Assembly (NCBI RefSeq): GCF_001194135.2
Contig: NC_069001.1
Coordinates: 8,078,109 to 8,117,829 of the forward strand
Reading direction: 5' to 3'
DNA: 39,721 nt
From: Octopus bimaculoides
Taxonomy: Eukaryota
Within the stretch, counting starts at the first letter, position 1. The number at the start of each line of letters is the position of its first letter. Shown here one piece after another: positions 2,078-36,759 of this stretch. A model generated the notes under the pieces. It had not been told where the DNA came from and searched no databases. It saw only the letters and a program-made list of their open reading frames with translations. The position numbers and the translations under genes are program-made.

Positions 2078-2956
2078 TTACCTGACACGTTGTTGTGTTA
2101 CAGTCTTCTCTGTTGTATGAATGCGTTTGTGTCTAGTTAAATGATTTATTACAGAGAAGGACTTACCACAGATATCACAGCAATATGGTTTCTCTCCTGT
2201 ATGAATGCGTTTATGTCTAGTTAAATTACCAGTTTGAGAGAATGAATTACCACAGATATCACAATGATATGGTTTGCCTCCTGTATGAATGTGTTCATGG
2301 TTAGTTAATGTACGTCCATGAGAGAATGATTTACCACAGATAACACAGCAATAAGGCTTTTCACCTGTATGAATGCGTCTGTGGTTAGTTAATGTACTTC
2401 GTTCAGAGAATGATTTACTGCAGATATCACAGTGGAATGGCTTCTCTCCTGTATGAATGCGTTTATGAGAAGTTAAATGACCTTTTAGCGAGAATGATTT
2501 ACCACAGATATCACAGTGATATGATCTCTCTCCTGTATGACTATATTTGTGACTAGTTAAGTGACCCCTTAAAGAGAATGATTTACCACAGATATCACAG
2601 TGATATGGTTTCTCTCTTGTATGAACATATTTATGATTACTTAAGTGACAAGATACAGAGAACGATTTACCACAGATATCACAGTGATACGGTTTCTCTC
2701 CTGTATGAATACGTTTGTGTCTAGTTAAGGTACTACTTACAGCAAATGATTTACCACAGGTATCACAGTTAAATGGTTTTTCTCCTGTATGAATGCGTTT
2801 ATGAATAGTGAAGTGACCTTTATGAGAGAATGACCTTTTACAGGTATTGCAATGATAAGATGTCTTTCCTATCTCTTTCAGTATATCATCAGAAAAATCA
2901 ACCACTTTAGACTCTGTTTTACATTTAATTGTGTTCTCACAGAATTCATTTTCCAT
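2078..2956 (-). CDS. C2H2 zinc-finger protein ZNF1, 292 aa, 9 tandem fingers
   Basis: CxxC-x12-HxxxH repeats with TGEKPY linkers; N-terminus [31 protein letters not shown] is homologous to the other cluster members; splice acceptor AG at 3259-3258. Confidence 0.93.
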
Positions 2957-3545
2957 AACTTTGTTTTTATCACCATAATATATATATTTTATTCTTAAAT
3001 ATTTCTATGGAAAAATTTTTCATCAACTCTTATTTTTATTAATTTCTGAAGTGGCTGGAAAGTCTTTTATAAATTTGTCCAGGTTAAGTAAAATCCAAAG
3101 CCATCTTGTTCGCATTCCATATAGTGGAGTACAGAAATGTTGTTACAAATCTCAATTCACAGGAAATATAACATCTTCCTACAGTCTTTAAAGGGTGATA
3201 AATATTGATGATACATCTCAAGGGCAAAATTCTTTAATGCCAATGCCATCTGATATTCTGAAATAATAGAAAGACAGTATAAGATACAGAATATATTTAA
3301 AAAGTAAAGAGCTAACAGTGGAAATGTTACAACCATCTATTTTGATAAACTGTAGATAAAGGCCTTGAGTGAATAGTTGGAATTTATTTTTTAATTAGTG
3401 ATTAAAATTCTATCATAGAATCTTGAGTGAACTCTTCGTATATTCAGGCTACAGATACAATGAAAAAACCTGAAAACATCTCAAGCTGCATTCTGATATT
3501 TTTTATCTCACATGTGTGGCAGGAAGTTTTATTCCTAATAAAATG

Positions 3546-5460: not shown

Positions 5461-5726
5461 AAACGTATAGAGAATGGATATTATTAACTTTCTTCTAATA
5501 TTAAAGAAAATCTGAAGGGAATAGTAGTGTCCTGATAAGAAGTATAATTGAGCGAGCGTGCATGCTTCTTTCTTTTATGTATTTCGAGGGATTAGCTCTT
5601 AATTTCTGATCATTATATGCCCTATTTTTGAGAGTCGCTAAAAATTGCCCCCCTTGTTATTTTATAGAAAGAAATTTCTCTCAAATATGATTTCTTTTAA
5701 TTCGGAATTCTTATTTCCCAATCGAT

Positions 5727-6031
5727 TGGTTTCGGGTTCAGTCCCACCGCGTGACACCTTGGGCAAGTGTCATCTACTATAGCCTTAGACCGACCGAAGC
5801 TTGTAAGTGGATTTGGTAGACAGAAGCTGAAAGAAATGTCGTGTGTATGTGTGTGTATGTTCCTGTTAGTTACCTGCCAGCGCTTGGCAACCGGTGTTTG
5901 TTTACATCCTCAATTAACCGATACAATAAGTGCCAGGTTAAGAAATATGGGTAGTGGAACCTATTTCTTCGACTAAATCCTTGAAAGCAATGTCCTAACA
6001 CGGCCGCAATCAAATGACGCAGAAGTAAAAG
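5727..6031 (+). mobile_element. SINE family A copy
   Basis: GGTTTCGGGTTCAGTCCCACCGCG...GGATTTGGTAGACAGAAGCTGAAAGAA...GGCCGCAATCAAATGAC...GTAAAAGA. Confidence 0.75.
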
Positions 6032-7625
6032 ATACAAGACCAGTCTTCTGTACTTAAAACGGGGGTCATATATTTTGCATCGAAACTGCGGATAAACATA
6101 CAATGTTAGCTTTACTGTGACATAATACGAATTTACTGCTGCAGACGAAGGAATTATATGATCATTGACATCGTTGAAGGAATTTGATGAAAGCAACTGA
6201 AAACCTTAGTAACAACAACATCTATTTCATAGTTTTTAAAGAAGTCACACTATTTAACGCTTCTCTGTTTACTTCTCAAAACGGTAAGTTTATAAAGATT
6301 AGCTTTAAAGTTGTTATAATTTGTGTAAATAACAATGATCCTTTCAAAGATACAGAAATTTGAAGTGGAAGTATCGATGAAAATTTTTTTCTTTTCGTCC
6401 TGACAGGTACAGGATGGACTTTCAAGTCAAATATTAATCTGTTATTCTTGAAAACGTAGAGTCGGCTGTTGTGTGCAATATAAAGTAAATTCAATTTTTT
6501 TTTTCTATGTAAATTTGAATTTCATTTGAGTATTTGAAATAATTTGCCGCATAATTTTAGGGAACCGATGAGCGAATTAAATGTACTCAGTACTGGATTA
6601 AACACAGAAGTATAAAAGCTAAAGACCTCCGAAGGCATGTCACTAAATACCGATCTTTCGAATTAACTACAAGCAGTGCATACATCCTATCATGAATGAG
6701 TTTTAATGCCTTCGTTACTATATTGTAATATTGTCTTCTAATTTTGGGTCAACCAAAGCCTTGTGAGTAGATTTGGCAGATGGAAACGAGAAGAAACCTG
6801 TTGTGTGTGTATCTTTGTGCTGTGTTTTACCCCGCACTACTACTTGACAACTAGTGTTGATTTGGTTTTATGTCTCCATAATCAAGCATTTCAGCAAAAG
6901 ATAGAATAAAACTTTAAAAAGTACTGGGGTCGATTTATTCAACTAAACTCTTCAAAGTGGACTTCATTATGTTTGTTTTTTGGACAGTCATTGCAAGTTA
7001 CTATGTGTTTCCAGCACTGCTTTAGCTTATATAATGTTACACAATGTAGAAATATATTTGTAAACTGTACATATATAGATTTTTAAATCTCATGACATAG
7101 TTTTAATAGCTAATTAAAAAGTAGTTCAATCGTTAAGATGTTTATTTGTACAGTGTATCTGTATAAAAACTCACTAAAATACTTCTGTTGAATCTTTATT
7201 TTTAAATATTTTCTATCATCTTTGCTTTTCTCTTTTATTTCAGAAATATCTGATGGCATTGGCATAAAAGATTTTGTTTTTACTTCAAATGCATCGATTG
7301 TATTTACCATCTTTTAAAAACTGAAGGAAGATGTTATACACACAAAGTGTAACTATATAAATCTATGGCAGAATTACCATGAAATATATCGTCTGTATGA
7401 GATTATAGGAACATTTGTCTACTTCACTGTCTGAATTGTGCATGAGAGAGTTTTTGCATTTGAATTAAACTTGGACACATTCACAGAAGAGTATATGGCA
7501 TCTTCAGATATTGATAAAGACAAAGTTGTTAGAAATAAATCAGTAGAAATACTTGTTAGGAATAAAATATAATAAAAAAAAGAGGAGAGAAATATTTCTG
7601 TGATGTGGTAAAACGAGTAAAAATT

Positions 7626-8741
7626 ATGGAAAATAAATTATCTAAGATGCAGGCTAAACGTAAAAAAATATCTAAAAAGATTGATTTTCCTGATGAGATG
7701 CTGAAGGATATAGGAAAGGTGTTGTACCGTTGTGATATCTGTAAAAAGTCATTCTCTCAAAAAGGTAATCTTGCTACTCACAAACGTACTCATACAGGAG
7801 AGAAACCATATCACTGTGATATCTGTGGAAAATCATTCTCTCATGGAAGTACCTTAACTACTCACAAACGCATTCATACAGGAGAGAAGCCATATCCTTG
7901 TGATACCTGTGGTAGATCATTCTCTCAAGTAATTCAGTTAACTAACCACAAACGCATTCATACAGGAGAGAAGCCATATCACTGTGATATCTGTGGTATA
8001 TCATTCTCTAAACGAAGTACTTTAACTACACACAATCGTATTCATACAGGAGAGAAGCCATATCACTGTGAGAGCTGTGGTAAAGCATTCTCAGTAAGTA
8101 GTAACTTAATTAACCATGAACGCATTCATACTGGAGAGAAACCATATCACTGTGATATATGTGGCAAGTCGTTCTCTCAGATAGTTACCTTAACTAACCA
8201 TAAACATGTCCATACAGGAGAGAAACCATATCCCTGTGATATTTGTGGCAAATCATTCTCTCAAAGTGGTATCTTAACTATTCACAAACGTATTCACTCA
8301 GGTGATAAGCCTTATCACTGTGATATTTGTGGTAATTCCTTCTCTGAAAGAAGAGTCTTAACTACACACAAACGTGTTCATACAGGAGAAAAACCTTATC
8401 ACTGTGATATCTGTGGCAAATCATTTTCTGTAAGAAGTACCTTGACTAATCACAAACATATTCATACAGGAGATAAACCACATCACTGTAACATTTGTGG
8501 TAAGTCATTTTCTCAAAGAAGTAAATTAACTATTCACAATTATATTCATGCAGGAAATAAACCACATCACTGTGATACTTGTGGTAAATCATTTTCTCAA
8601 AATGGTGACTTAACAAGACACAAACGCATTCATACAGGAGAGAAGCCATATTATTGTGATATCTGTGGTAAATCTTTCTCTCTGAGAGGCAGCTTAACTC
8701 GACACATGTATATTCATACAGGGGAAAAGCGATATAAATGA
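7626..8741 (+). CDS. C2H2 zinc-finger protein ZNF2, 371 aa, 12 tandem fingers
   Basis: The track start at 7605 is GTG; the first in-frame ATG at 7626 gives [24 protein letters not shown], homologous to paralogs. 12 fingers with TGEKPY linkers; acceptor TTTCAG at 7243. Confidence 0.93.
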
Positions 8742-11477: not shown

Positions 11478-11837
11478 TTTTTCAAAATATGCGGAAAAAT
11501 ATGGAGATTATGATTCTGAAAATAATTTCCGAAAATTTTTGTAGTTAGGGTAGGGTTAGTGTTAGGGAAAAAAGTGAAAAAAATGAAGAAATCGGGGGGA
11601 AGGAGAAGCCAAAATTTCAAAATACCGATTTTTGGCAAAAAAAAAAAATGGGAGAAAATAGGGTGACGGGAGGAAGTCTTTCCCCTTATTATTTAACACA
11701 CGCGCCGGTTCGATTTCTACTCATTTATTCATTTTTTTCTAAAATTTTCGTTGCGTCCTGCAACCTTTTCAATAGTCGTTGACTCCACACACTCATAAAC
11801 ATGTAAGCGTGTGCTGTAATTTTGTGCGCATTTACCT

Positions 11838-12122
11838 ATCACTCCACTTCTGACATTATGCGCATGTTCAACCGGATATTGTCCTGAGGAAGAACGTGTG
11901 AGCCTAACGTTGATGGTGTCATATCCGTTTGAATGAATAACCCATCTAACAGTAACCTATAAATTAATAAATAAGTAGTCATATTTCTCTATTTTATTAT
12001 AATGTATATACGTAGTAGTAGTCCTTCTAGAAGCACTATCTCACTTCGCCACTATAAAGTGATATTTGATTGCTATATGTAAACATTATTTAATCAATGA
12101 AAGACGATTTTATGAGGTACGT
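11838..12122 (+). promoter_or_regulatory. Putative ZNF3 promoter and non-coding exon 1 with splice donor
   Basis: CpG-richer patch; ATGCGCATGTTCAACCGGATATT at 11858-11880 (NRF1-like plus ETS-like); donor GAG|GTACGT at 12116|12117; ZNF3 acceptor lies 3.4 kb downstream. Confidence 0.55.
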
Positions 12123-12370
12123 TTTTTTTCTCTTTGGTTTGTCATTAAATCGTCTTTTGTTCGTTGATCTGTTATATTTCTGATTGCTTTGATCTATCAT
12201 AAAATTCGTTACACCTGTTTTTTGATCATCTGTCCGTGTTATTAGGTCCAGCCTGGTGCTCAATTAGAAAAATTACAATAAGCAGGAATTACCATTTTGA
12301 AGAATTAACCCTCTTTATCTTGTGTATACATACACATATACGAATGTGTGTCTGTGTATATATATATATA

Positions 12371-15340: not shown

Positions 15341-15871
15341 CTACAAATGTGTAAATTTCATGCAAGGTTTAATTATGTCATAACAAATTACAAAAAGAAT
15401 TCATTTGTTCAGTTAAAGTCTAATTTTTCAGTATAGAAATGTAGTAAAATTTTCACTGTTAAATCACTGATTTTTTTTTTTTTATTATCCTCTCTATCTT
15501 ATGCTGTTTCTTTATTATTACAGACTATCAGATGATACAAGCATAAGAGAACATTTTTTAACTTCGGATACATCACTATTTATCATCATTTAAAAACTAA
15601 AGGAAGATGTTATTCAGAAGAGATATAAAACTGTTTATGTAATTACTGTGAAATATTTTCCTCTGAAAAACCTCTGTGTTGTCTGGGACATGAAATAGAT
15701 GATTTTACATTTTAATTAAACTTGGACAAATTTTACAAAAGGATTTGCGGTGACTTCAGATATCAACAAAATCAGAGATGATGAAAATATAGAAAATTGG
15801 AAGAGGATAAAATACTTAAACAAAAGTAATTTATACATTATTTTTTCTCTTTTTGTGGTGAAAAAAGAACA

Positions 15872-16642
15872 ATGATGGAAAATGAATTATGTGGGAACCT
15901 GGTTAAGTGTAAAACAGAGCCTGAAAGTATTGATTTTCCTGAAAAGATGCTTAAAGAGATAAGAAAAACATCATATTACTGTGATATCTGTAAAAAGTCA
16001 TTTGCTCAAAAAAGTAACCTTACAGCTCATATACGTATTCATACGGGAGAAAAACCATACCAGTGTGATATGTGCGGTAAATCATTCTCACGAAACGATG
16101 ATTTAAGCATACATATTCGTCTTCATACAGGAGAGGAGCGACATCGCTGTGACATTTGTGGTAAATCATTTTCTCATGGAAGTACATTGACTACTCACAA
16201 ACGAACTCATACAGGAGAAAAACCATATCACTGTGATATTTGTGGTAAATCATTCTCTCAAAATTCTCACTTGACTAAGCACAAACGCATTCATACAGGA
16301 GAGAGACCATATCAGTGTCATATCTGTGGTAAATCATTTTCTCGCATATATACCTTAACTGCTCACATACGCATTCACACAGGTGAAAAGCCATATCATT
16401 GTGATATCTGTGGTAAACCATTCTCTCTAAAAAGTCACATAGCTTCTCACAGACCCGTTCATACAGGAGAGAAACCATATCACTGTGATATCTGTGGTAA
16501 ATCATTCTCTCAAAAGTATCATTTCAATAAACATATGTGTATTCATATGCAAGAGAAACCATTTCAGTGTGATATCTGTGATAAATCATTTTCTCAGAAA
16601 TGCCAGCTAAGTGCACATGTACGTGTTCATATAGAAGAGTAA
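15872..16642 (+). CDS. C2H2 zinc-finger protein ZNF3, 256 aa, 8 tandem fingers
   Basis: [32 protein letters not shown] leader, 8 fingers, ends HIEE*; acceptor TACAG at 15523. Confidence 0.93.
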
Positions 16643-19930: not shown

Positions 19931-20342
19931 AAACATACCGACACAAGGGTAGTGTTTAGAAGCCATGATGTATATTTTTTGTACTCTGCCAAACATATCT
20001 TTGTTACTCCCTTGCTTTACGTCCTCACCCACCTTTCCTATCTTACATCTCATCACTTGAAGCTCTCCATCCTCATTTCATCATTCCCTGTGCTGATCAC
20101 ACCATACACTTCTTCACATTTACTTCCCCCTTCATTAGGCCTTCATATAAGAGACTGTTTTGGATCATCCTCATCCTCGCTACACCCAAATTATTCATTT
20201 TCTACACTGAAATTATATGTGTGTGTGTATAGATAGGTATTATTATGTACATACATACAGTAAATGTAGGCGTGGCTGTGTGGAATTGATCTTTCCAGAA
20301 ATCAAGGGCTATGGTTGAATGATAAAAGTACACATGGATGTG

Positions 20343-20703
20343 GAGGCGCAGTTGCCTTGTGGTTAGGGCAGCGGACTCGCGGTTTCGATTCCCAGACCTG
20401 GCGTTGTGAGTTTATTGAGCGAATACACTTAAAGCTCGACGAGGCTCCGGCAGGGGATGGTGGCGAACCCTGCTGTACTCTTCCACCACAACTTTCTCTC
20501 ACTCTTACTTCCTGTTTCTGTTGTGCCTGTAATTCAAAGGGTCAGCCTTGTCACGCTGAATATCCCTGAGATCTACGTTAAGGGTACACGTGTCTGTGGA
20601 GTGCTCAGCCACTTGCACGTTAATTTCATGAGCAGGCTGTTCCGTTGATCGGATCAACTGGAACCCTCGACGTCGTAAGCGACGGAGTGCCAACAACAAC
20701 AAC
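20343..20703 (+). mobile_element. Full-length tRNA-derived SINE with (CAA)n tail
   Basis: A-box-like TGGTTAGGGCAGC, B-box-like GGTTTCGATTCCC, GC-rich body, CAACAACAACAAC tail. Confidence 0.75.
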
Positions 20704-20728
20704 GTGGATACATGTCAACAATTCATTC

Positions 20729-21150
20729 TCATCACCGGGGACATTTTGTCATGCGCATGTTCAACCGGATATTTACTTCACACTTTCAAAATCGAAGAGA
20801 TACTTCGTTGCCATTCAAAGCCCGTCCATCTCAAGAAAACCCCATTTGTTGTGAGATTTTAAAGTTATATAAAAGAAATTAACATTAACATATTATGCTA
20901 TAACATATACGAAGTAACACACTTCACAACCAACACTGACTTTTAATAATAACAGGGGATTTGTGTAATATTTGTCTTTTTCTTTTCTGTTATTCTTCAC
21001 TCAGAGCTTTACTGCTTCATTCACTGAAAGAGATATAGACGAGGTAATTTTTCAAATAGTTATTTTCTTCATTCAATCGTCTATTTTCCGTTCATCAATA
21101 TAATGTTTCTCTTTGTTTGATCTATCATAATATATTCGTAACACCTCCTA
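20729..21150 (+). promoter_or_regulatory. Paralogous copy of the putative ZNF3 promoter, exon 1 and intron start, upstream of the Tigger ORF
   Basis: Identical 23-mer ATGCGCATGTTCAACCGGATATT (20751-20773 = 11858-11880); donor GAG|GTAATT at 21043|21044; ~21068-21146 aligns with ~12142-12216. Confidence 0.7.
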
Positions 21151-21255
21151 CTAGACTGATAGAACACCTTCACGTCACCGAAAATTTCTTTAGTTAAATA
21201 TTAAATTGATATTGATCTTAGCCATAAGGCTAACGGTCAGTGCTATAATTATTTA

Positions 21256-23507
21256 CAGTAATACCTCGCTTTACGAGACCCGGGTTTACGAGTTTTATTC
21301 TATAATAAATATTAAAAAATGTTAAACAGTCATTTTGTGTGTGGCATCACTGGTTCTGACACGTCTACACATAGCGACGGAGTAAAATGACGGGATAAAG
21401 TTTCAATGTCTTAATTAGCACGTGCGCTTTGTTGAATGAGATTATAAGCTAATTCTTCGTGCTACATATTTTATATTGTATACGTGTACTTTACTATTTT
21501 CGGCATTTTGAAAAAACCCACACGATATGTCTAAACGAAAGTGTACAACCGATACCGACGGGAGCAAAAAGAAACGAAAAGCCATAACTTTAAAAACAAA
21601 GTATGAAATTGTAAAAATGCACGATGGCGGTACAACTGTGAAAGACATTTGTGACAGATTTTCACTTAAATCGTCGACTGTCTGCACAATTCTCAAAGAA
21701 AAACAGAAATATTTATCTCAAGTGAGAAATGCGCAGCCTTTGCAATCAACGTGGTCTCGTAAAAGAGATGCTGGAAGCATTATTCCGGAAATGGAAAGAC
21801 TTGTAAATGCATGGATAAGGGACACAACACAACGCATGAATATGACTGTTGATCAAGCGTCGATTCGTAGCAAAGCATTGTGTCTTTTCAATCTGCTTAA
21901 AGAAATGAAAGGTGACACAAACGAAACTTTTGTTGCGAGCAGAGGATGGTTTGTGCGATTTAAAAATCGACATGGGTGGCATGCTGTTAGAATGCAAAGC
22001 AAAGCATCAAACGCTGATCTCCATCCAGCAACAAAAAAATTTCCAGAAACATTGGCAAAAATAATTGAAGAAGGAGGCTACATGCCACAACTGATTTTTA
22101 ATGTCAGTGAAACAGGACTTTTCTGGAAACGTATGCCACCCAGAAGTTACATTGCTAAGGAAGAATCTGCGCTGCCTGGTTTTAAAGTTGCAAATGATCT
22201 ACTGACATTATTATTTGGAGGAAATGCATCTGGGGATTTTAAATTAAAACCAATGCTAGTTTATCGAGCGGAAAATCCTGGGGCACTCAAAGGTATCTTA
22301 AAAAGTACTCTTCCAGTCATATGGAAATCTAATGAAAAAGCTTGGATTACGACAACATTATTTGAAGAATGGTTTTCATATCACTTTGTGCCAGAAGTTA
22401 AGGAATATTGTGATAAGAATGAACTTCCATTTCATGCAATGTTGATTATTGACTATGCACCTAACCACCTTCCAATTCTGCAACATCGCCATCCTGATGT
22501 CAAAGTTATTTTTTTGCCTCGGGATACATCACTTTTGCAACCAATGGACCAGGGTGTTATTGCAACATTTAAAGCTCATTATTTACGCTACACATTTGCA
22601 ATGCTGAATGAAGAAACAGTCAAAGAAGGGGGACCTTCTGTAATGGAACTCTGGAAAAGTTACAACATTTATACTGCTGTAAAAATCATAAGAAAAGCAT
22701 GGGATAATGTCAGTGAAAAGAATATGAAGAGTGTTTGGAAAAACCTTTGCCCTCAATTTCTTACTGATTTTGAGAATTTTGAATCACTACAAGAAAATGT
22801 ACTAAAAGAAATTGTAAAGCTGGCAAATGAATTGAATCTCGACGTGTCAGCAAGTGACATAGATGAGCTGCTTCAATCACATAGTGACGAACTCACCAAC
22901 GAAGAACTTGTTGCAATGCAAGAGGAGGCAACAGCAGAAAAGGAAAAGGACACTGTTGATGAAACGCCAGTTAGTACGTTCAAATTGAAAGGACTCGAGG
23001 AAGCATTTCAGCATTTGGATAAAGCTTTGGAAATTTTTCAAGTACAAGATCCAAATTTTGAACGAAGTGCAAGAGTTTCTACTACCATAACAAATGCTTC
23101 TTTGTGTTACCGAAAAATTTATAGAGAGCAAAAATATGCTTCTTCTTAGCAAACAACTCTAGACTTGTTTTCTAAAAAAGAAATCTACAAGTCTGTCTTT
23201 GGGTGCTTGTGAATCAGTGACTGTGTCTACTACAAGTGATGGTGTGTGTGAGTGTAAGTGATTCAGAAAACAATTATAATATATTTTATAATAAATGATC
23301 TTGACATTCTTTTTACTTTACATTCTACTGTTGTTTTATTGCCATTTATTTACGAGTATTACAATTTTTATAGGTAAAATATCTTTCTGGGAACGAATTA
23401 CGATTTATAAAATTGCTACTATGGGAAATTAATGCTCTGTTTTACGAGTTTTCACTTTATGAGCAGTGTCCAGGAGTAAATTAACTCATATACCAAGGCA
23501 TTAACTG
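21256..23507 (+). mobile_element. Full-length pogo/Tigger DNA transposon (2252 bp) with decayed TIRs and TA target duplication
   Basis: TA|CAGTAATACCTCGCTTTACGAG on the left; right end reverse complement CAGTTAATGCCTTGGTATATGAG followed by TA (17/23 identical); subterminal TTTACGAG repeats and Tigger-like GGAACGAATTA. Confidence 0.85.
21527..23149 (+). CDS. Tigger/pogo-derived (TIGD1/CENP-B-like) protein, 540 aa: HTH_psq, CENP-B HTH and DDE_1 domains; first catalytic Asp replaced by Ser
   Basis: KRKAITLKTKYEIV HTH; ASRGWFVRFKNRH; IFNVSETGLFWKRMP (normally NVDETG); IIDYAPNH; LQPMDQGVI; uninterrupted frame. Confidence 0.9.
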   Translation: MSKRKCTTDTDGSKKKRKAITLKTKYEIVKMHDGGTTVKDICDRFSLKSSTVCTILKEKQKYLSQVRNAQPLQSTWSRKRDAGSIIPEMERLVNAWIRDTTQRMNMTVDQASIRSKALCLFNLLKEMKGDTNETFVASRGWFVRFKNRHGWHAVRMQSKASNADLHPATKKFPETLAKIIEEGGYMPQLIFNVSETGLFWKRMPPRSYIAKEESALPGFKVANDLLTLLFGGNASGDFKLKPMLVYRAENPGALKGILKSTLPVIWKSNEKAWITTTLFEEWFSYHFVPEVKEYCDKNELPFHAMLIIDYAPNHLPILQHRHPDVKVIFLPRDTSLLQPMDQGVIATFKAHYLRYTFAMLNEETVKEGGPSVMELWKSYNIYTAVKIIRKAWDNVSEKNMKSVWKNLCPQFLTDFENFESLQENVLKEIVKLANELNLDVSASDIDELLQSHSDELTNEELVAMQEEATAEKEKDTVDETPVSTFKLKGLEEAFQHLDKALEIFQVQDPNFERSARVSTTITNASLCYRKIYREQKYASS

Positions 23508-23689
23508 TAGTTTTTATCTCTCTCATATATACATGGATAAGATGAGTTTCAGTAGAATGCACTGCAAAATTTGTTCTGGCTTTCGGCACTTTGAGTTCAA
23601 ATCCCAAACTTCACTTTTTATCTTTTCCATCTTTGTAATCATCAACCCCTGGACATTTCTGTCTTGAGTTGTATGACTCATGCAGTTGA

Positions 23690-24146
23690 TTACCCAGTTT
23701 TTATGGCATATGGATGACCAAAATCAGAACATTCTCCTGGAACGGGACACCTGTCCATTGCAGGTTAACTCATTTACAGTTGAATGGAGCCACATAAAAC
23801 GAAGTACTTTGTTCAAGAATACAACGGTCCACCAAGTCTGGGAATTAAAATCACAATCTTGCAGTCATGAGTGCAACACTCTAACCACTCGGCCACATTC
23901 CTTCACCTGTCTTTCTGGGATCAATATTTTATCCTTTTACTTGTTTCAGTCATTTGACTGTGGCCATGCTGGAGCACCACCTTAAAGGGTTTTAATTGAA
24001 GAAATTGACCCCAGGACTTACTCTTGGTAAGCCTAGTACTTGTTCTGTTGGTCTCTTTTACCAAACTGCTAAGTTACAGGGATGTAAACACACCTTACCA
24101 GTTAGACAGACAGACACACAAATATATATATATATATATATATATA
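23690..24146 (-). mobile_element. SINE family G fragment followed by the 3' half of a family A SINE
   Basis: TGTTCAAGAATACAAC..GGGAATTAAAATCAC..CTAACCACTCGGCCAC; TTTCAGTCATTTGACTGTGGCCATGCTGGAGCACC. Confidence 0.6.
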
Positions 24147-26791
24147 NNNNNNNNNNNNNNNNNNNNNNNNNNNNNNNNNNNNNNNNNNNNNNNNNNNNNN
24201 NNNNNNNNNNNNNNNNNNNNNNNNNNNNNNNNNNNNNNNNNNNNNNNNNNNNNNNNNNNNNNNNNNNNNNNNNNNNNNNNNNNNATTTTATCCTTTTACT
24301 TGTTTCAGTCATTTGACTGTGGCCATGCTGGAGCACCACCTTAAAGGGTTTTAATTGAAGAAATTGACCCCAGGACTTACTCTTGGTAAGCCTAGTACTT
24401 GTTCTGTTGGTCTCTTTTACCAAACTGCTAAGTTACAGGGATGTAAACACACCTTACCAGTTAGACAGACAGACACACAAATATATATATATATATATAT
24501 ATACATGTTTAGAAATAAATGAGAGTTCTTTCACAAAGAAGAAAGAGCTGTTGGGGTTCCTCATTTATTTCTCTTCAGGGAGTTCATTGACATGCGTTTT
24601 GCTCCATTTATTATTATCCATATCTTCTCAAAATGTATCACTTAAACTTGGTATCTCTACCTGTAAAACGGCTGTGATATCTTGTTTTTTAGTGTAATTT
24701 TACTACCTCCGGTAACTATTAACGTATGTAAATTATCAAAAGTTTTAATAACTGAGATAATATTAATATATACATAAACTTATATATATATATATATACG
24801 ATAGGCTTCTTTTAGTTTTCGTCTACCAGATCCACTCACAAGGCTTTGCTAAGCTTACATTAAAACCTCTCAGTTCTATTATGTACATTAGTCAGACCTG
24901 TGTCATCTTCATTGTTGCTTTCACTACATTATTGTACAGCTCTAGTAATCCATTCATCTACACCTAGTTTCCTGAGTGAACACAAAATTACTGAATGCAG
25001 TATCCCATCAAAAACCATCTTTAATGCAACAAATAGCAGAAATAGTGATCCGCCCATAGCTAAGTACTTCTGCTGCTGTTACTTCACTAGGAAGATTGTA
25101 TCCATGTTGCCTCTTCTGGGCATGAAGCCAAACTGCATTTGATCTTGGTTTTCTCTGTTAAATCTAAATTGTGCTACTAACTTTTTCCAACTTTCATAAC
25201 CTGATTCAGTAGATTGATTTCTCTAAAACTTTTCTCTATTTAACCCATAAAGCATTGAGATTTGGACTTGCTTAGCATGGACTGCTGAGCACATTGAATT
25301 TTGTCAGAATAAAGCAACAAAGCTGACTCCACATCGTTTGCCACTGTTTCGAAATGAAACATAGATGCAATTTCTTCATTAGAGCACTGGAATTCCCAAG
25401 CACTATACATATATATTCCATATAGGAAAGACTTCTTTTTGTACCCCTCATAAAAGATTTAAAACTATTACACATGGTTTGATTTCCTACCGTGTCTTAT
25501 AATAATAATAATGAGAAAGTCATAAAAATGAAGAATTTTTATTAAAAAAAAAAAAAAATTTTCTTCTGTTTTATGTATATTCATGTCCCAATTTATCAAA
25601 CGTTAAGGCCTAAATTCCATAACTCTATGAAATTTGCCTAACCTTGGGACATGAATACATAATACAGAAATGAATTTTTTTAAAAATAGAAATTCTTAAT
25701 TTTTATGACTTTCTCATCATAATTAACTACTTTCTGTTTGTGGCTTTTCAGATGACTCCTAAGGCCTGTCTTACTCAGGACAGATGTGAACATAATTGTT
25801 ACATGTTGAATTGGGCTGTATGCCAATACATTCAGGCAAGTTAACATTAAGCCCCTAACAAACATATCTCTTGAGCTTTTCATACTTGCTACAATTTTGT
25901 TTGAATCCTTTCTTTCCATCATACAGTACTTCCCTTCAAGCTGATCAATCTAGAATGCAGTTTTCTCATCCATTTTCGACCTTCTCCAGTGTATTCTTGA
26001 TGCATTCATTATACCTTAACTTCAGTTTGTGGGCTGATCTTTGTGTTTTTCCCACACCACCACTTAACAACCAGTGTTTGGGTGTTTACATCCTCATAAC
26101 TTAGTGGTTCGGCCAAAGTGACCAGGAGAATAAATACCAAGCTTTAAAAGAAAAAAATAAGTGTTAGTCAAATACTGAGATAAGCTTTATCCAGTCTGAA
26201 CTTCCGTAAAGTATGTAGTTTTGAGCCAATGTTAGAAATTAATGTTTCCATGTTCTTGAAAAGCCAAAACTATGCAAGTTATAAGAGATCTGTCAATAGT
26301 TTGCACATTTATATTTTGGGGTTGAGACCCTGCTCTTCAGGGAAAAACTGTTAATATATTTTGCACTTGAAGTTCTGGGGTCAACTGGGCTTATTCATTT
26401 GGGAGTTAAGTAATTATCAGTTATATATTGGTGGCTAATACATGCCGTCTGCAATTATTTGGTATTTCTGTTACTGAAATGAAAAAGCAAATTATATCCA
26501 TCATGGTAGTTTGGAGAAAGAAATGTAACAACAGACAAAAATTGCAACAATTCAGTTATATTTTTATTATAGCTTCTATGTTGCCATGTTGTTTGTTCAA
26601 AAATGAAGAAATATCACAAATATAAGTTTATTTATTACAACCAACAAAGATAAAATAGTTTCAGATTTTAAATATACTAGGGCTTTGGGAATACAAGTTC
26701 CTGAGTTAGTCTGCCTCTCACTTGGCTATCATTGATTTATTGCCTACACATGTTCACTGGATAACCATTATGATTATAATTTAACCCTTTA

Positions 26792-27186: not shown

Positions 27187-27480
27187 CCAACATACTAAAT
27201 TAAGTTACTCTGTAGTTTATCTTTCAAGCACTATATGATAGTGTCTGGAGTCAGGTTCTCCGTATCAAATGATGTCAAGAAATTATTCAGCATCTAAGTA
27301 AACAGTTAGTGGATAACAGTTAAAAATATGGTGCTATATTATTTCACCAACATAAATATTGCAGTAGTTATACAAAATGTAGTATTGGAAGGTTGTTATC
27401 ACAGTATTATATCTTCTCTCTTGTGGGAATACAGTTGGATAATGTCTTTCTTTTATAGAAACTTTTTATATAGGACATGG

Positions 27481-28491
27481 TTATTCTGCAGCATGAATAC
27501 AGACATGTGTAGTCAAGTGACTTTTCTGAGAGAATGATTTATTGCAGATTTCACAGCGAAATGGCTTCTCTCCTGTATGAATGTATTTGTGTTTAGTTAG
27601 TGTACCATTTCGAGAGAATGATTTACCACAGGTATCACAGTGATATGGCTTCTCTCCTGTATGGATGTGTTTATGTTTAGACAGGTTACTTCCTTCTGAG
27701 AATGATTTACCACAGATATCACAGTGATATGGTTTCTCTCCTGTATGAATGCGTTTGTGTTTAGTTAAGTCACCACTTCGAGAGAATGATTTGTCACAAA
27801 TATCACAGTGATACGGCTCATCTCCTGTATGAATGTATCTGTGTGCAGTTAACTGCACTGTTATAGTGAATGATTTACCACAAATATCACAGCAATATGG
27901 CTTTTCTCCAGTATGAATGCGTTTGTGTATAGTTAAATCATGACTTTGAGAGAATGATTTATCACAGAACTCACAGTGATATGGTTTTTCTCCTGTATGA
28001 ATGCGCTTATGTGTAGTTAAGTGACTTCCTTCAGAGAATGATTTTCCACAGACATCACAGAGATATGGCCTCTCTCCTGTATGACTACGTTTGTGTATAG
28101 TTAAGGTATCATTTTGCGAGAAAGATTTACCACAGATGTCACAGTGATAAGGTTTTTCTCCTGTGTGAATACGGTTGTGAGTATTTAAATGACTTCTTTG
28201 TGAGAATGATTTACCACAGATATCGCAATAATATGGTCTCTCTCCTGTATGAATATATATATGACGAGTTAAACTAACACTTTGAGAAAAGGATTTACCA
28301 CAGACATCACAGTGATATGGTTTTTCTCCTGTATGAATACGTTTGTGAGTTGTCAGGTTACCTTTTCGAGAGAATGATTTTTCACATATGCCACAGTGAT
28401 ATTCTATTTTCCCTATCTCTTTTGGGATTTCATCAGTAAAATCAATTCGTTTACTCTGATTTACATTTAACATTGTACTTACATAATTCAT
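27481..28491 (-). CDS. C2H2 zinc-finger protein ZNF4, 336 aa, 11 tandem fingers, frameshift-derived N-terminus
   Basis: 11 fingers, ends HAAE*; [14 protein letters not shown] leader homologous to paralogs; acceptor AG at 28870-28869. Confidence 0.9.
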
Positions 28492-31397: not shown

Positions 31398-31580
31398 ACC
31401 TACCAACTTGCCCAAATCAGCATCCAATTTGTAAAGCAATTTCTGAAGAAGGTATTCTTTCGATATGACTCGACAAAATCAAAATTAAACTCCGGTATTT
31501 TCCGAAATTCCCCACCCACTACGGCGTGGCGATCTTTCGGTACTAGTACGCAACAACATCCGGTCGTTGCGCGCACGCAT
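31398..31580 (-). promoter_or_regulatory. Putative ZNF4 promoter and non-coding exon 1
   Basis: CpG-rich; the minus strand reads ATGCGTGCGCGCAACGACCGGATGTTGT (31580-31553), resembling the ZNF3 module; donor TTG|GTAGGT at 31404|31403. Confidence 0.55.
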
Positions 31581-32119
31581 ACTGATTACATGATCGTATA
31601 GTGTGTTTATGTGTTTAAAGTTTGAGAACTGTATGCATCTGAGGGGGAGAAGGTTTGAGTTTAGTGGGCCATTCATTTCTTTTTTCTATTTAATGTTGTC
31701 TTTTCATCCTGAATGTTCCGAGACGCCTCACCGGAGCCAAGAAATAAAAGAAAAATAATGTAATAGATGTAAAACGACTTGCTCTGAACGAATATAAAAA
31801 AATTAAAAAAATTCGTAGTAATTTTCATTGAAAAATATCCATTTTACTAGAAGTTATGATCATCCAGAGTCCGGAAATCGATAGCAAAATATTCGATGTA
31901 AATTGGATTAATAAATTTATTATTTATTTATGATTGTTATATACAAGATCAAGTATATAGGTTGCATTTGTTTCTTTACAGTTAAAGAAGACAAGATTGG
32001 TACATTCGGTATTACTTATTCGGTAAATTTGGACAAGTATACCCGGACTCGGTTCACCAAGAAAATAAAAGACCGGATTTTTCACGTGGAAAAGTATCTT
32101 TCTCGCCAAAACTCTTATA

Positions 32120-33889
32120 GGGTAACTAATGCGTTTCATTTTTGCGTGTGGAGAGAGAGAGAATCTTTCTACAAAGAAGCGATTTAAAATAAATATATCT
32201 TAAATGTGCTCGTGGAAAAATATTGTATCTTTTAAAAATATCCTTAATTGGCACTGTCATGCTCACTCGTCCACCTTATTAGAAAACACAAATTTAATAT
32301 AAAAACATATTTCCTGAAATTGCAAATTATTTAAAATATAAAAATATAATTTTCAACAGAGAGAATTTATCAAAATAGAAAACAAATGAAGTTTGAAGTT
32401 TAAAAATAATAGGATCGACCACTCACGACTAGCTAGCGCGGACGCGAGTACCCTTATACTCTGTGTTGTGTTTTCAAACGCATGGATATAGGTGTCAAAT
32501 TTGTTCCAATAACTTTCGAGTAATAGATAGATAGAGAGAGAGAGACAGACAGACATATAGCTGGCTTTGGCCAGTCATGGTATTAGCTGTCAGTAGCCAA
32601 AGAATCGACAGGCATGCAGGCAGACAGACAGATACTTCACTAGCAGTGAGCACTTTCACTTCTGACAGCTAATAGCATGACAGTGCCCCTTAATTTACAT
32701 ATTGTATGTTTGTTTTTTTTTAAATTGTTTTCTCCTCCGCAGTACTTATGCATTACTGTGTGTGAGAGAGAACTGAAAAGCATACAAAAATAAGTAAGCG
32801 GAATTTGCCAAGCTGTTCGCATTTAGTTCTACTGTGATGTCGTGTGCAACCTGTCAGTTCACATACTTTGATGGCATCAGAATTTGTTATATAAATGATG
32901 AAGAAAGTATTGTATTCCTCCGGGACCATGGTGTTCTGCCCACCAATATGATTTGTCCACACTGTCGGATTGAATGCGTGTATAGAAAAGAACAGTGTCT
33001 CTGGCAATGCATGAGCTACACGGTCACTAAATCTAAAAAAAGGCAGCAGTGTGATTATTCTGTATCGGACTTTGAAGGATCCTTTCTTGATAATGCCCGT
33101 ATTCCTCCGTGGAAAGTCGTTCTTTTCGTAAACGAATTTCTACGTAGTACTTGGAGTAATATCATAGAGACAACCCAGGAATTATTGTTTTCAAGAGCTG
33201 AAGAATGGAGGTCATTCTGTTGTGGAGTAACAGAAAACTGGCTTCACAAACAGGAACGAATTGGTGGAGAATCAGTTGAAGTTGAGATTGATGAGACCTT
33301 AATTGTCCACCGGAAACCCGGGAGGGGTAGGATTCTGAGCCAAGTTTGGTTGTTTAGTGGAATAGAGTGAACCAGTAAGCGTCGTTTCGTTGTGCCACTA
33401 ATAAATAAGAAGCGTGACAAAGCGACACTGGTTCCTCTGATCCAGTCATTTATCAAACCTGGCTCGGTTATTTATAGTGATACATGGGCTGCCTACAATG
33501 ATTTAAGCAGTTTGGGTTATCGCCATTACGTGATAAACCATTCTGAAAATATTGATCAACCAAATATACACATACAAAATATTGAACAATTGTGGAGGAA
33601 GATAAAATGGAGTATGAGAAGGCTGCCAAGTGTTGAAACAAAATATTTCCATCAATATCTGGCCAGATATTTATTTATTTCCTCAGAGAAGAATAAGAAA
33701 TTATTACTCCACAATTTTTTTCGAGAGGCAGCCCAATTATATGTACCCCTCTCAAGTCAGCCATGTCCTTCAACTACATAAGGACTCATGTCTCTTCTCT
33801 CTTTCATAGAAGGCTCTTTTTTTCTCCATAGTCTCTCATCTCTCTCTCTCCGTACCTACATGCACGGAAATGAAACGCATTAGTTACCC
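32120..33889 (+). mobile_element. Merlin (IS1595/IS1016-like) DNA transposon, 1770 bp, perfect 22-bp TIRs
   Basis: GGGTAACTAATGCGTTTCATTT at 32120-32141 and its reverse complement at 33868-33889; symmetric subterminal (GA)n/(TC)n; no 8-9 bp TSD recognisable. Confidence 0.88.
32837..33781 (+). pseudogene. Merlin/ISXO2-like DDE transposase, 314 codons, one in-frame TGA at 33368-33370
   Basis: Track ORFs 32834-33370 and 33392-33781 are in the same frame; Zn-ribbon CPHC..WQC..C; motifs VEIDET, IYSDTW, QNIEQLW; GIE*TSKRRF where GIER is expected. Confidence 0.85.
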
Positions 33890-34930: not shown

Positions 34931-35742
34931 CCTATTTAGCAGCTTCATCACAAGAATGATTTTTAAAAAATTAACTCAAGAATCATATTTGATATATTTA
35001 TTTCATAGTAATAAAAACAATAAAATTCAAATTGTATTTCTATTTTAGCTGAAACATGTCAGTATGATACTGAATTTTGTATTTAAAAGAATGATAATGG
35101 ATACTGATTTTTAATCAGAAACAGTAGTCTGGGTGGGAGAGGGAGTTAAATTGTGAGACACGAGCAAGAATTTTTCAAGTCAGAAAGGTAGCAAGCGAAA
35201 GAAAGGCAATTAATGTACTCAGTTTTATTTCTTCTCAAACATGCCCAATAACTGTAATAAGTTATTTGAGCAAGTGTGTGTATACACTTCGCACAAAGTT
35301 GTATGATGTAATTTTAAAAACAAATTTTAAAGTAAAATTCATATGTTTAAGTAAAGGATTATATCTACAGTCTATCAATATAAAAATGTAAAATTTCTAC
35401 TCTCCTTAAATGACTTATATTTTGTATTTTCTATTTTTTTCAGAAAAACAGATGACATTGTCATTTTATTCAGATGCATTATTAATATTCATCATTTGCT
35501 AACGACTAAAGGAAGATATTTCAGATTTTATTTTGGATTACCTTTGAATAATATTGCCTTTGGATAAAATGAGTAGCAAAATATTTATTTTGCCACCTGG
35601 AATGCATACAAAATGATCAAATTTGCGAAAGATTTTGCAGTGTTTCAACATGAGGATTAAGATTTCAGTTGAAGGAAACTTAGAAAGAAAATGCAAGATC
35701 AAGTAAAAGAAAATATCTGAACATTGTGAAAAAAGAAAATTT

Positions 35743-36735
35743 ATGGGAAAGGAATTATGAAAGAACCAAAGTAGAGGTCAAATACAATCTAAAAGTATTG
35801 CTTTTTATGATATGCTGAACGAGATGAGGAAAACATACCACTGTGATGTCTGTAAAAAGTCATTCTTTCATAAAAGTAACTTAACTACTCACAAACGCTT
35901 TCATACAGGAGAAAAACCATATCAGTGCAATATCTGTGGTAAATTATTTGCTACAACTAGTAATTTGACTGCTCACAAGCGTATCCATACAGGAGAGAAA
36001 CCATATTGCTGTGATATCTGTGGTAAATCATATGCTCAAAAAAGTAACTTAACTACGCACAAACATGTTCATACAGGAGAGAAGCCATATTACTGCAGTA
36101 TCTGTGATAAATCATTCTCTCAAAAGAGTCTCTTAACTACACACAGCCGTATTCATACTGGAGAAACACCATATCATTGTGATATTTGTGGTAAATCATT
36201 TTCCGTGAGTAGTGCCTTAATTAGTCACAGACGTTTTCATACTGGGGAAACACCATATCGCTGTGATATGTGTGGTAAATCATTCTCTCAAACTAGTGAA
36301 GTAACTAAACACAAACGCCTTCACACTGGAGAGAGGCCCTATTACTGTGAGATCTGTGGTAAATCATTCTCTTAAGATTATCACTTAACTAAACACATAC
36401 TGGTGAAAAGCCATATCATTGTGATATCTGCGGTAAATCATTTTCTCAAAACAGTCACTTAACTGGACACAAACATATTCACACCAGAAAGAAACCGTAT
36501 CACTATGACTTCTCTGGTGAATCATTCTCTCAGGCACGGTTCCTTACCAGACACGTGTATAGTCATACTGGAGGAAAGACCTATCAATGTGATGTATGTG
36601 GTAGAGCATTCTCTCAAAAGGTTCATTTAAAGAGGCACAATCACATTCATACAAGAGAACAAAACCTAATGTGATACTTGTGAGTAATCACTCTTTTAAG
36701 CCAATTACTTAACTACACATTCCTATATTCATGCA
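35743..36735 (+). pseudogene. Disabled or truncated C2H2 zinc-finger gene ZNF5 (6 intact fingers in 35812-36375, plus broken fingers)
   Basis: ATG 35743 gives MGKEL* (TGA 35758-60 in place of Cys); CAA>TAA at 36373-75 inside finger 7; ~10-nt deletion near 36395; further degenerate fingers ending HAEE* near 36735. Confidence 0.8.
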
Positions 36736-36759
36736 GAAGAGTAACTGTACAGTCATTCA

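Follow-up and report, generated by a model that had tools for sequence, protein, structure and literature searches.

A Tigger transposase probably kept as a host DNA-binding gene behind a putative ZNF-type 5' module in an Octopus bimaculoides zinc-finger cluster

The window analyzed here is a stretch of 39,721 nucleotides of the Octopus bimaculoides genome (contig NC_069001.1, positions 8,078,109 to 8,117,829), which contains five finger exons of C2H2 zinc-finger (ZNF) genes, many copies of short interspersed elements (SINEs) and miniature inverted-repeat transposable elements (MITEs), and four N gaps. An exact-product look-up with the ZNF3 protein puts the window at about 8.08-8.12 Mb of chromosome CM046621.1. 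Between the third and the fourth finger exon lies a Tigger transposon (pogo superfamily), whose intact open reading frame (ORF) is very probably a selectively maintained gene of the host, encoding a Tigger-derived DNA-binding protein. Just upstream of the element, the segment 20729-21255 resembles the region preceding one of the ZNF genes, and an earlier reading of the letters alone (hereafter the sequence-only reading) had taken it for a captured ZNF promoter, first exon and intron start.

The Tigger element (21256-23507, plus strand, 2252 bp) is flanked by a TA target-site duplication (21254-21255 and 23508-23509) and bounded by terminal inverted repeats (TIRs), namely CAGTAATACCTCGCTTTACGAG at 21256-21277 on the 5' side and a degenerate repeat at 23485-23507 on the 3' side. 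The TIRs start with CAGTAATACCTCG... and CAGTTAATGCCTTGG..., respectively, which are of the CAG type, and match at about 16/23 positions. The insertion had been described as lying in sense orientation about 210 bp into a putative intron; the measured distance is 212 bp, and the boundaries are as described. The ORF (21527-23149, plus strand, 540 aa) contains the domains CENP-B_N, HTH_Tnp_Tc5 and DDE_1, with Pfam E-values of 4.8e-5, 3.4e-11 and 7.5e-40, respectively, all above the curated cut-offs. The catalytic positions correspond to S194 (codon 22106-22108), where the Asp has been lost, D309 and D341. At the first of these positions (FNV-D-ET), the proteins of both O. bimaculoides and Octopus sinensis have Ser, whereas 5/5 outgroup Tigger/TIGD1 proteins have Asp; the second residue is Asp in O. 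bimaculoides but Asn in O. sinensis, and the third is unchanged. The element also includes an AATAAA (23290-23295, plus strand) located 141 nt past the stop codon and kept in O. sinensis. Its 5' region (21256-21526, plus strand), a candidate internal promoter and 5' untranslated region (5' UTR), holds four upstream ATGs (21319, 21387, 21406 and 21436). Subterminal repeated motifs, TTTACGAG and TTTATGAG, are observed at 21256-21300 and 23340-23470, and might be bound by the conserved DNA-binding domain.

The closest database protein is the O. sinensis "tigger transposable element-derived protein 1-like", with 83% identity, and the next-closest among 5.8 billion proteins, from a frog, shows 57% identity; identities to Tigger and TIGD1 proteins range from 43 to 57%. 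The closest non-octopus relative (P0003) is encoded on a 3-kb contig. Fusions of ZNF, KRAB or SCAN with Tigger occur among the protein matches (P0021, P0045 and P0103). A second copy of the 5' end of this Tigger family lies 22 kb downstream, past the window end (locus L003, 19878-20107, about 45.69 kb in window coordinates); it has a TIR with 1 mismatch, is TA-flanked and shows 79% identity over 251 bp, and a SINE interrupts it at the end of the locus. The Tigger family therefore had other copies.

In O. sinensis, the orthologous locus (L001) shows collinearity with the window for about 25 kb (90.6% identity), and contains, in this order, the ZNF3 orthologue, the upstream module described below, Tigger, the ZNF4 orthologue, an ISXO2-like ORF and ZNF5. 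Tigger occupies the identical TA site in both species, which implies that the insertion predates the O. bimaculoides/O. sinensis split and that the element has been immobile since.

Between the orthologues, the ORF shows 55 synonymous and 83 nonsynonymous differences, giving a ratio of nonsynonymous to synonymous rates (ω) of 0.38, with 43/31/65 differences at the three codon positions, no stop codon in either species and two in-frame indels. Because simple counting overstates dS when transitions are common, we simulated neutral evolution in 2000 runs with the substitution spectrum of the 12 kb local noncoding alignment, scaled to the divergence of the ORF. Neutral ω was 0.83±0.18, with a minimum of 0.41, and 7.2 new stops were expected (P(no new stop)=0.0005). 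Constraint differs strongly along the protein: ω is 0.03 in aa 1-75 (CENP-B_N; 14 synonymous and 2 nonsynonymous changes), 0.16 in aa 76-150 (HTH_Tnp_Tc5), 0.54 in the linker, 0.53 in the DDE core and 0.92 in the C-terminal third. The DNA-binding domain departs both from neutrality (p=2e-8) and from the rest of the ORF (p=3e-5). A local contrast is provided by an ISXO2/IS1595-like transposase ORF (Pfam DDE_Tnp_IS1595), which is split in the window (32834-33370 and 33392-33781, plus strand) and intact in O. sinensis (L001 20965-21912; 315 aa, an annotated gene); with an ω of 0.6-0.7, it looks like a decaying element. The low ω, the absence of stops and the constrained DNA-binding domain indicate that the Tigger ORF is a maintained gene and not junk. 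Together, the fixed site, dead catalysis, degenerate ends and selected DNA-binding domain point to a domesticated transposase.

The ZNF genes around the element are represented by the finger exons of ZNF1 (2078-2956, minus strand; exon acceptor near 3302), ZNF2 (7605-8741, plus strand; exon start 7244), ZNF3 (15872-16642, plus strand; exon start 15524), ZNF4 (27481-28491, minus strand; exon start ~28911) and ZNF5 (35444-36753, with the ORF from 35812-36375 onward, plus strand). These exons open at good acceptors about 350 nt 5' of their ATGs, and their 5' UTR portions are about 65% alike across paralogues. Since finger exons start at an acceptor (7244, 15524 and 35444), the ZNF genes are expected to have a separate noncoding upstream exon 1, a gene structure on which the sequence-only reading relied and which these exon starts support.

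Candidates for such an exon are found upstream of both ZNF3 and Tigger. The 23-mer ATGCGCATGTTCAACCGGATATT, a candidate promoter-proximal factor site, occurs exactly twice in the window, upstream of Tigger at 20751-20773 and upstream of ZNF3 at 11858-11880, in both cases on the plus strand. The identity noticed earlier is exact, 0 copies were expected in 100 shuffles, and no further copy was found in the window with up to 6 mismatches allowed. In a BLAST comparison, 21016-21146 matches 12089-12216, upstream of the ZNF3 finger exon, with 72% identity over 134 columns (E=1e-13). The homologous exon ends and donors that had been proposed, GACGAG/GTAATT (exon end 21043) and TATGAG/GTACGT (exon end 12116), indeed fall in the same alignment column, and the aligned intron beyond the donor, put at about 80 bp before, extends to about 110 bp. 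The putative noncoding exon 1 of the Tigger locus thus spans 20774-21043 (plus strand), its last 28 nt (21016-21043) being homologous to the ZNF3 exon-1 end, and is followed by the GT donor (GTAATT) and a conserved intron-start motif (21044-21150, plus strand) that is 72% identical to 12117-12216 and 69% identical to 4742-4646 on the minus strand. The paralogous module upstream of ZNF3 (11858-12228, plus strand) comprises the 23-mer, the exon-1 end (12089-12116), the donor at 12117 and the intron motif to 12228; it is located 3.4 kb upstream of the exon start at 15524, in the same orientation, with a CpG-rich island at 11551-11950. The distance from 23-mer to donor is also alike, 270 nt at the Tigger locus and 236 nt at the ZNF3 locus. 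The ATG of the ZNF3 exon-1 copy is CTG at the homologous position of the Tigger-locus copy; in the putative ZNF3 exon 1, this ATG, at 12097, would start an upstream ORF that continues into exon 2 for a total of about 30 codons (12097-12116 spliced to 15524).

A third, partial copy of the intron motif, overlooked earlier, occurs at 4777-4633 on the minus strand, 1.3 kb upstream of the ZNF1 finger exon and in the same orientation, without the GT at the donor column and without the 23-mer. A profile search of the module found these three copies only in the window, with none detectable upstream of ZNF2, ZNF4 or ZNF5, and none in the 6.6 kb past the right end of the window or in one unrelated ZNF locus (L004), about 67 kb of DNA being covered in all. 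It is therefore doubtful that the module is a general mark of ZNF promoters. L004 was the one other octopus locus obtained with the ZNF3 protein, as that search was swamped by C2H2 proteins of all animals, and the gene ranges consulted seem to be limited to coding sequence (CDS), without UTR exons. Between the 23-mer and the exon end (body 20774-21015), similarity between the two loci is not detectable (global alignment z=1.4). The homology therefore consists of two islands, not of a continuous 500 bp, and unbroken homology across 20729-21255 is ruled out. A structured RNA in the conserved intron motif is likewise ruled out by its fold (z=0.19) and by the lack of an Rfam match in the whole window. 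The paralogy to the ZNF3 upstream region stands, given the same orientation to the downstream gene and the donor at the homologous position, and we regard the segment as a probable ZNF-type 5' unit, produced when the cluster underwent its tandem duplications.

Comparison with O. sinensis shows an uneven conservation of this module. The 23-mer is kept at 22/23 bases (L001 8467-8489), and 21031-21126 shows one mismatch in 96 nt, which places it in the top 2-4% or so of noncoding windows; as that share of windows is equally conserved, this is insufficient as proof of function. The exon-1 body (20774-21015) diverges at the neutral rate (86-89% identity), and a TATA-like string at 20866 is not kept. 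At 20336-20706 (plus strand), 45 bp upstream of the 23-mer, O. bimaculoides alone carries a 371-bp retroposon flanked by an ~8-bp target duplication, the site being empty in O. sinensis, so that orthologous conservation of the module starts at 20707. A 91%-identical copy elsewhere in O. sinensis (L001 12006-12361) indicates that this retroposon family was active after the species split. Conversely, O. sinensis alone carries an insertion of about 400 bp (L001 8975-9373) just past the TIR, between 21274 and 21298, which includes a 91-aa ORF.

Only 484 bp separate the host donor from the transposase ATG, and this interval contains ten AGs, all with weak pyrimidine tracts. The AGs from 21256 to the ATG are preceded by 4-12 pyrimidines per 20 nt, compared to 14-18 at the finger-exon acceptors, and the caveat about weak acceptors raised in the sequence-only reading was thus justified. 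The AGs at 21258, 21440 and 21448 are kept between species, the tracts of these candidate acceptors having 10-12/20 pyrimidines. Splicing to the YAG at the TIR edge (21256-21258) would retain four upstream ATGs ahead of the ORF, whereas with 21440 or 21448 the 5' UTR would have none. Exon 1 itself has no in-frame ATG, the only upstream ATGs open ORFs of 2-23 codons, and no in-frame host protein domain fused to the transposase was found at exon 1.

Other splice partners lie past the element. In O. sinensis, a gene model (P0002) splices a GT internal to the ORF, equivalent to a GTTAGT donor at 22970-22975 (plus strand) of the window, to two downstream exons. These correspond to exon B (25752-25835, plus strand), with a strong TTTTCAG acceptor and a GC donor that is GT in O. 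sinensis, and exon C (27229-27297, plus strand), with an AG acceptor and a GTAAAC donor that is GTAAGT in O. sinensis. That exons B and C add coding sequence to the Tigger protein was rejected, given a 1-bp indel in exon B and a peptide identity of 68-74% compared to a nucleotide identity of 92-94%. They look like noncoding plus-strand exons, and would be a better splice partner for exon 1 than anything inside Tigger. A 223-bp self-inverted repeat (25503-25725; 72%), MITE-like, abuts the acceptor of exon B.

The sequence-only reading stated that no plus-strand ZNF exon follows the element before ZNF4. This is correct, no remnant finger exon having been found between Tigger and ZNF4, but it holds no further than that: ZNF5, the sole downstream plus-strand finger exon, begins at 35444, 14.4 kb downstream. 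The idea that a duplicated ZNF gene lost its finger exon is consequently in doubt: ZNF5 follows and is pseudogenising in both species, and exons B and C could link it to exon 1, so that a chain from exon 1 through B and C to the ZNF5 finger exon is a live possibility. In O. bimaculoides, ZNF5 is open for 187 aa, beyond which there are stops and frameshifted fingers; in O. sinensis (L001 23138-23600), it has several frameshifts, different from those of O. bimaculoides. Its CDS identity between the species, 87.6%, is at or below the neutral level, whereas ZNF3 and ZNF4 show extreme conservation (ω = 0.02-0.03).

The distribution of CpG dinucleotides bears on where transcription might start. The observed/expected (o/e) CpG ratio reaches 1.5-1.96 at 21250-21700, i.e. 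over the element 5' region and the ORF start, which is the maximum of the window (0.49 overall). Between species, 22/26 CpGs are retained across 20707-21526, including 12/14 across 20707-21255, compared to 70/119 in other noncoding DNA (p=0.014), a pattern expected of a germline-hypomethylated, promoter-like region. We infer a transcription start site (TSS) somewhere in the CpG-retaining 20707-21700, and transcripts ending at the conserved AATAAA at 23290. The weak acceptors, the four upstream ATGs, the ~400-bp insertion of O. sinensis, exons B and C, and the CpG o/e ratio together incline us slightly to place the TSS within the 5' region of the element itself, with exon 1 spliced past the element; this placement, itself somewhat short of an even chance, is a little more probable than its alternative. 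We are undecided whether the ZNF module drives the ORF in any way, and rate this somewhat below an even chance.

The explanation that we favor, by a modest preference when taken as a whole with its preference for an internal TSS, is that of a Tigger kept by selection as a host DNA-binding gene. Before the O. bimaculoides/O. sinensis split, a Tigger inserted in sense behind a probable ZNF-type 5' module, 212 bp into the putative first intron; the module combines the 23-mer site, the end and donor of a noncoding exon 1, and the conserved intron-start motif. The element is no longer mobile, given the change of the first Asp to Ser in both species, the degenerate TIRs and the fixation at one orthologous site, while its ORF has very probably been retained for its N-terminal CENP-B-type and Tc5-type helix-turn-helix DNA-binding domains, the predicted product being a TIGD/CENP-B-like DNA-binding protein. 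Exon 1 would mainly splice past the element to exon B (25752), leaving the ZNF module as an upstream promoter or enhancer at most; alternatively, exon 1 may be spliced directly into the element.

Several observations weigh against a maintained and expressed gene. In the assembly of O. sinensis, the Tigger frame is broken at about aa 119 by a 1-bp deletion near 21882, which, if real, would leave the O. sinensis gene dead or truncated; the 420 stop-free codons that follow it favor a very recent lesion or an assembly error. Apart from staying open, the ORF outside the DNA-binding domain has a ratio of nonsynonymous to synonymous differences that fits neutrality (p=0.17), and the comparison involves two species only, so that constraint is not assignable to one lineage. 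The O. bimaculoides annotation includes no gene call for the ORF at this locus, an exact-product look-up being empty, and a database search with the N-terminal 141 aa found no fragment, a weak negative since it missed known relatives as well. Model P0002 has no UTRs and may be derived from protein homology, not RNA, and is therefore taken as a hint only. Finally, the CpG counts are small, and invertebrate methylation patterns differ from vertebrate ones, which weakens the CpG argument.

Complete capture of the ZNF promoter and noncoding exon 1 is the alternative closest to the sequence-only reading. Transcription would start at 20780-21000, splice from 21043 to 21259, 21441 or 21449, and end at the AATAAA at 23290; a Tigger with its own poly(A) signal would thus have trapped a ZNF-cluster promoter and be co-regulated with the ZNFs, and ZNF5, 14 kb off and orphaned by this poly(A) trap, would have decayed. 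This scenario, which we consider rather unlikely, fits the sense orientation and the short distance from donor to ATG, and the persistence of the 23-mer, donor and intron motif despite the pseudogenisation of ZNF5. CpG retention upstream of the element, the three conserved AGs, two of which give a 5' UTR free of upstream ATGs, and the conserved AATAAA are also in its favor, and an ORF under selection needs a working promoter. Nevertheless, the candidate acceptors are poor compared to those of the finger exons, the exon B acceptor is far better for exon 1, and O. sinensis has its additional 400 bp, with a 91-aa ORF, in the would-be intron. In addition, neither the exon-1 body nor the TATA-like string is conserved above the neutral level, the conservation of the intron motif is matched by 2-4% of noncoding windows, and the strongest CpG o/e of the window sits over the element's own 5' region and ORF start. 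If, on the contrary, the 23-mer and the segment of about 130 bp were an old dispersed repeat unrelated to ZNF starts, their adjacency to Tigger would be coincidental. Two short homology islands with nothing alike between them, a third copy lacking both donor and 23-mer, the absence of copies at ZNF2, ZNF4 and ZNF5, and a window full of SINE and MITE families would all be compatible with such a repeat. We nonetheless find it improbable, as there are three copies only in about 67 kb, all within 17 kb of one ZNF cluster and each co-oriented with the gene downstream, two of them with a GT at the same column and a similar spacing from 23-mer to donor, and as the ZNF3 copy, which lies in a CpG-rich island, is followed after 3.4 kb by an exon with an acceptor at its start.

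The two remaining alternatives concern the ORF itself. It could be a neutrally decaying, dead transposon that by chance is still open in O. bimaculoides, and the frameshift in the O. sinensis assembly, the missing annotation in O. bimaculoides and the ω of 0.92 in the C-terminal third are what such a relic might show. Given that 0/2000 simulations reach ω≤0.38, that the absence of new stops is improbable (P=0.0005), that aa 1-75 carry 14 synonymous against 2 nonsynonymous changes, and that true decay is seen in the neighboring ISXO2-like ORF, which is broken here, we give this explanation very little credence. Even less probable is a still-autonomous Tigger whose ORF is conserved through the activity of its family. 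The complete domain set, the TA duplication and the second family copy 22 kb downstream suit an active element, whereas the shared insertion site in two species, the loss of an intact DDD triad through the Ser at the first position in both, the poorly matching TIRs (about 16/23), the 79% identity of the other copy seen, and the lack of any protein above 57% identity besides the orthologue do not.

Some further observations concern the cluster and its assembly. The O. bimaculoides annotation includes a 1013-aa minus-strand gene that runs from the ZNF4 ATG (28491) to below 5872, past ZNF2, and exact-product look-ups for ZNF4 and ZNF1 found no separate annotated products; this gene model is probably chimeric, several finger exons having been joined by read-through. 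CpG-rich islands with up to 15 CpG per 200 bp (o/e 1.0-1.7) lie between divergent ZNF genes at 31401-31700 and 5551-6200, and are candidate promoters of ZNF4 and of ZNF1/ZNF2, respectively; neither the 23-mer nor the intron motif is present in these two islands. A 219-bp segment is found at 23926-24144 and, 100% identical, at 24285-24503, flanking the N gap at 24147-24284, and is most likely an assembly artefact.

Fusion genes between host exons and transposases, formed by "transposase capture" via alternative splicing, are known from vertebrates. The octopus locus is similar in that a transposon lies in sense in a host (ZNF-type) intron, just past a donor exon, and differs in that its candidate acceptors are weak; moreover, since exon 1 is noncoding and has no ATG, at most a promoter and a 5' UTR would have been captured, and no protein domain. 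The ORF resembles the vertebrate pogo/Tigger-derived genes (TIGD2-7, JRK, JRKL, CENPB, CENPBD1, POGK and POGZ; PMC7386202, PMC4231638) in its CENP-B_N, HTH_Tnp_Tc5 and DDE_1 domains, in its fixed orthologous locus, in purifying selection, and in a partly lost triad with a retained DDE fold. It differs from them in being an independent event of the octopus lineage, seen in two species and with predicted expression. Domesticated pogo genes have kept the DNA-binding and DDE domains, partly lost their triads, and show Ka/Ks values of 0.05-0.2 (PMC7386202), compared to which the ω of 0.38 indicates a weaker constraint, confined to the DNA-binding domain. As remnants of the target-site duplication and TIRs are recognizable, the octopus ORF looks younger than the vertebrate genes. 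With autonomous Tigger1-like transposons (pogo superfamily, DD29-36D; PMC7386202, PMC9219625) the element shares the TA duplication, CAG... TIRs, the length of 2.25 kb and the ORF architecture, but it has lost the first Asp, has degenerate repeats, and has been immobile since before the species split. Seven pogo-derived CENPB-type transcription factors have been catalogued in O. bimaculoides from genome searches (PMC10027918), so that genes of this kind were already known in the species. The proposed class is the same, i.e. transcription factors that arose in cephalopods by co-option of a pogo DNA-binding domain, although most of those genes carry BTB/POZ (PMC10027918), which the Tigger ORF lacks. 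The Tigger ORF seems to belong to this kind as a gene absent from the annotation, and its history is unusually easy to read.

This history unites two things at one locus, a ZNF cluster and a transposon, in that a selected DNA-binding gene derived from a transposase lies in a ZNF-type first intron. Cephalopod genomes are characterized by very large C2H2 zinc-finger clusters and a heavy transposon load. The locus offers a clean and datable transposase domestication outside vertebrates and insects, with the scars of insertion still visible and the gene missing from the O. bimaculoides annotation. If the ZNF promoter does not drive the ORF, this is one more TIGD-like gene, for which the ZNF module was merely a landing site. 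If it does, a new transcription-factor-like gene would have inherited the expression programme of a family by insertion alone. A promoter trap of this type, if true, would mean that a transposase was domesticated in a lophotrochozoan by taking over a promoter and 5' UTR with no fusion at the protein level, and this within the very gene family whose expansion marks cephalopod genomes.

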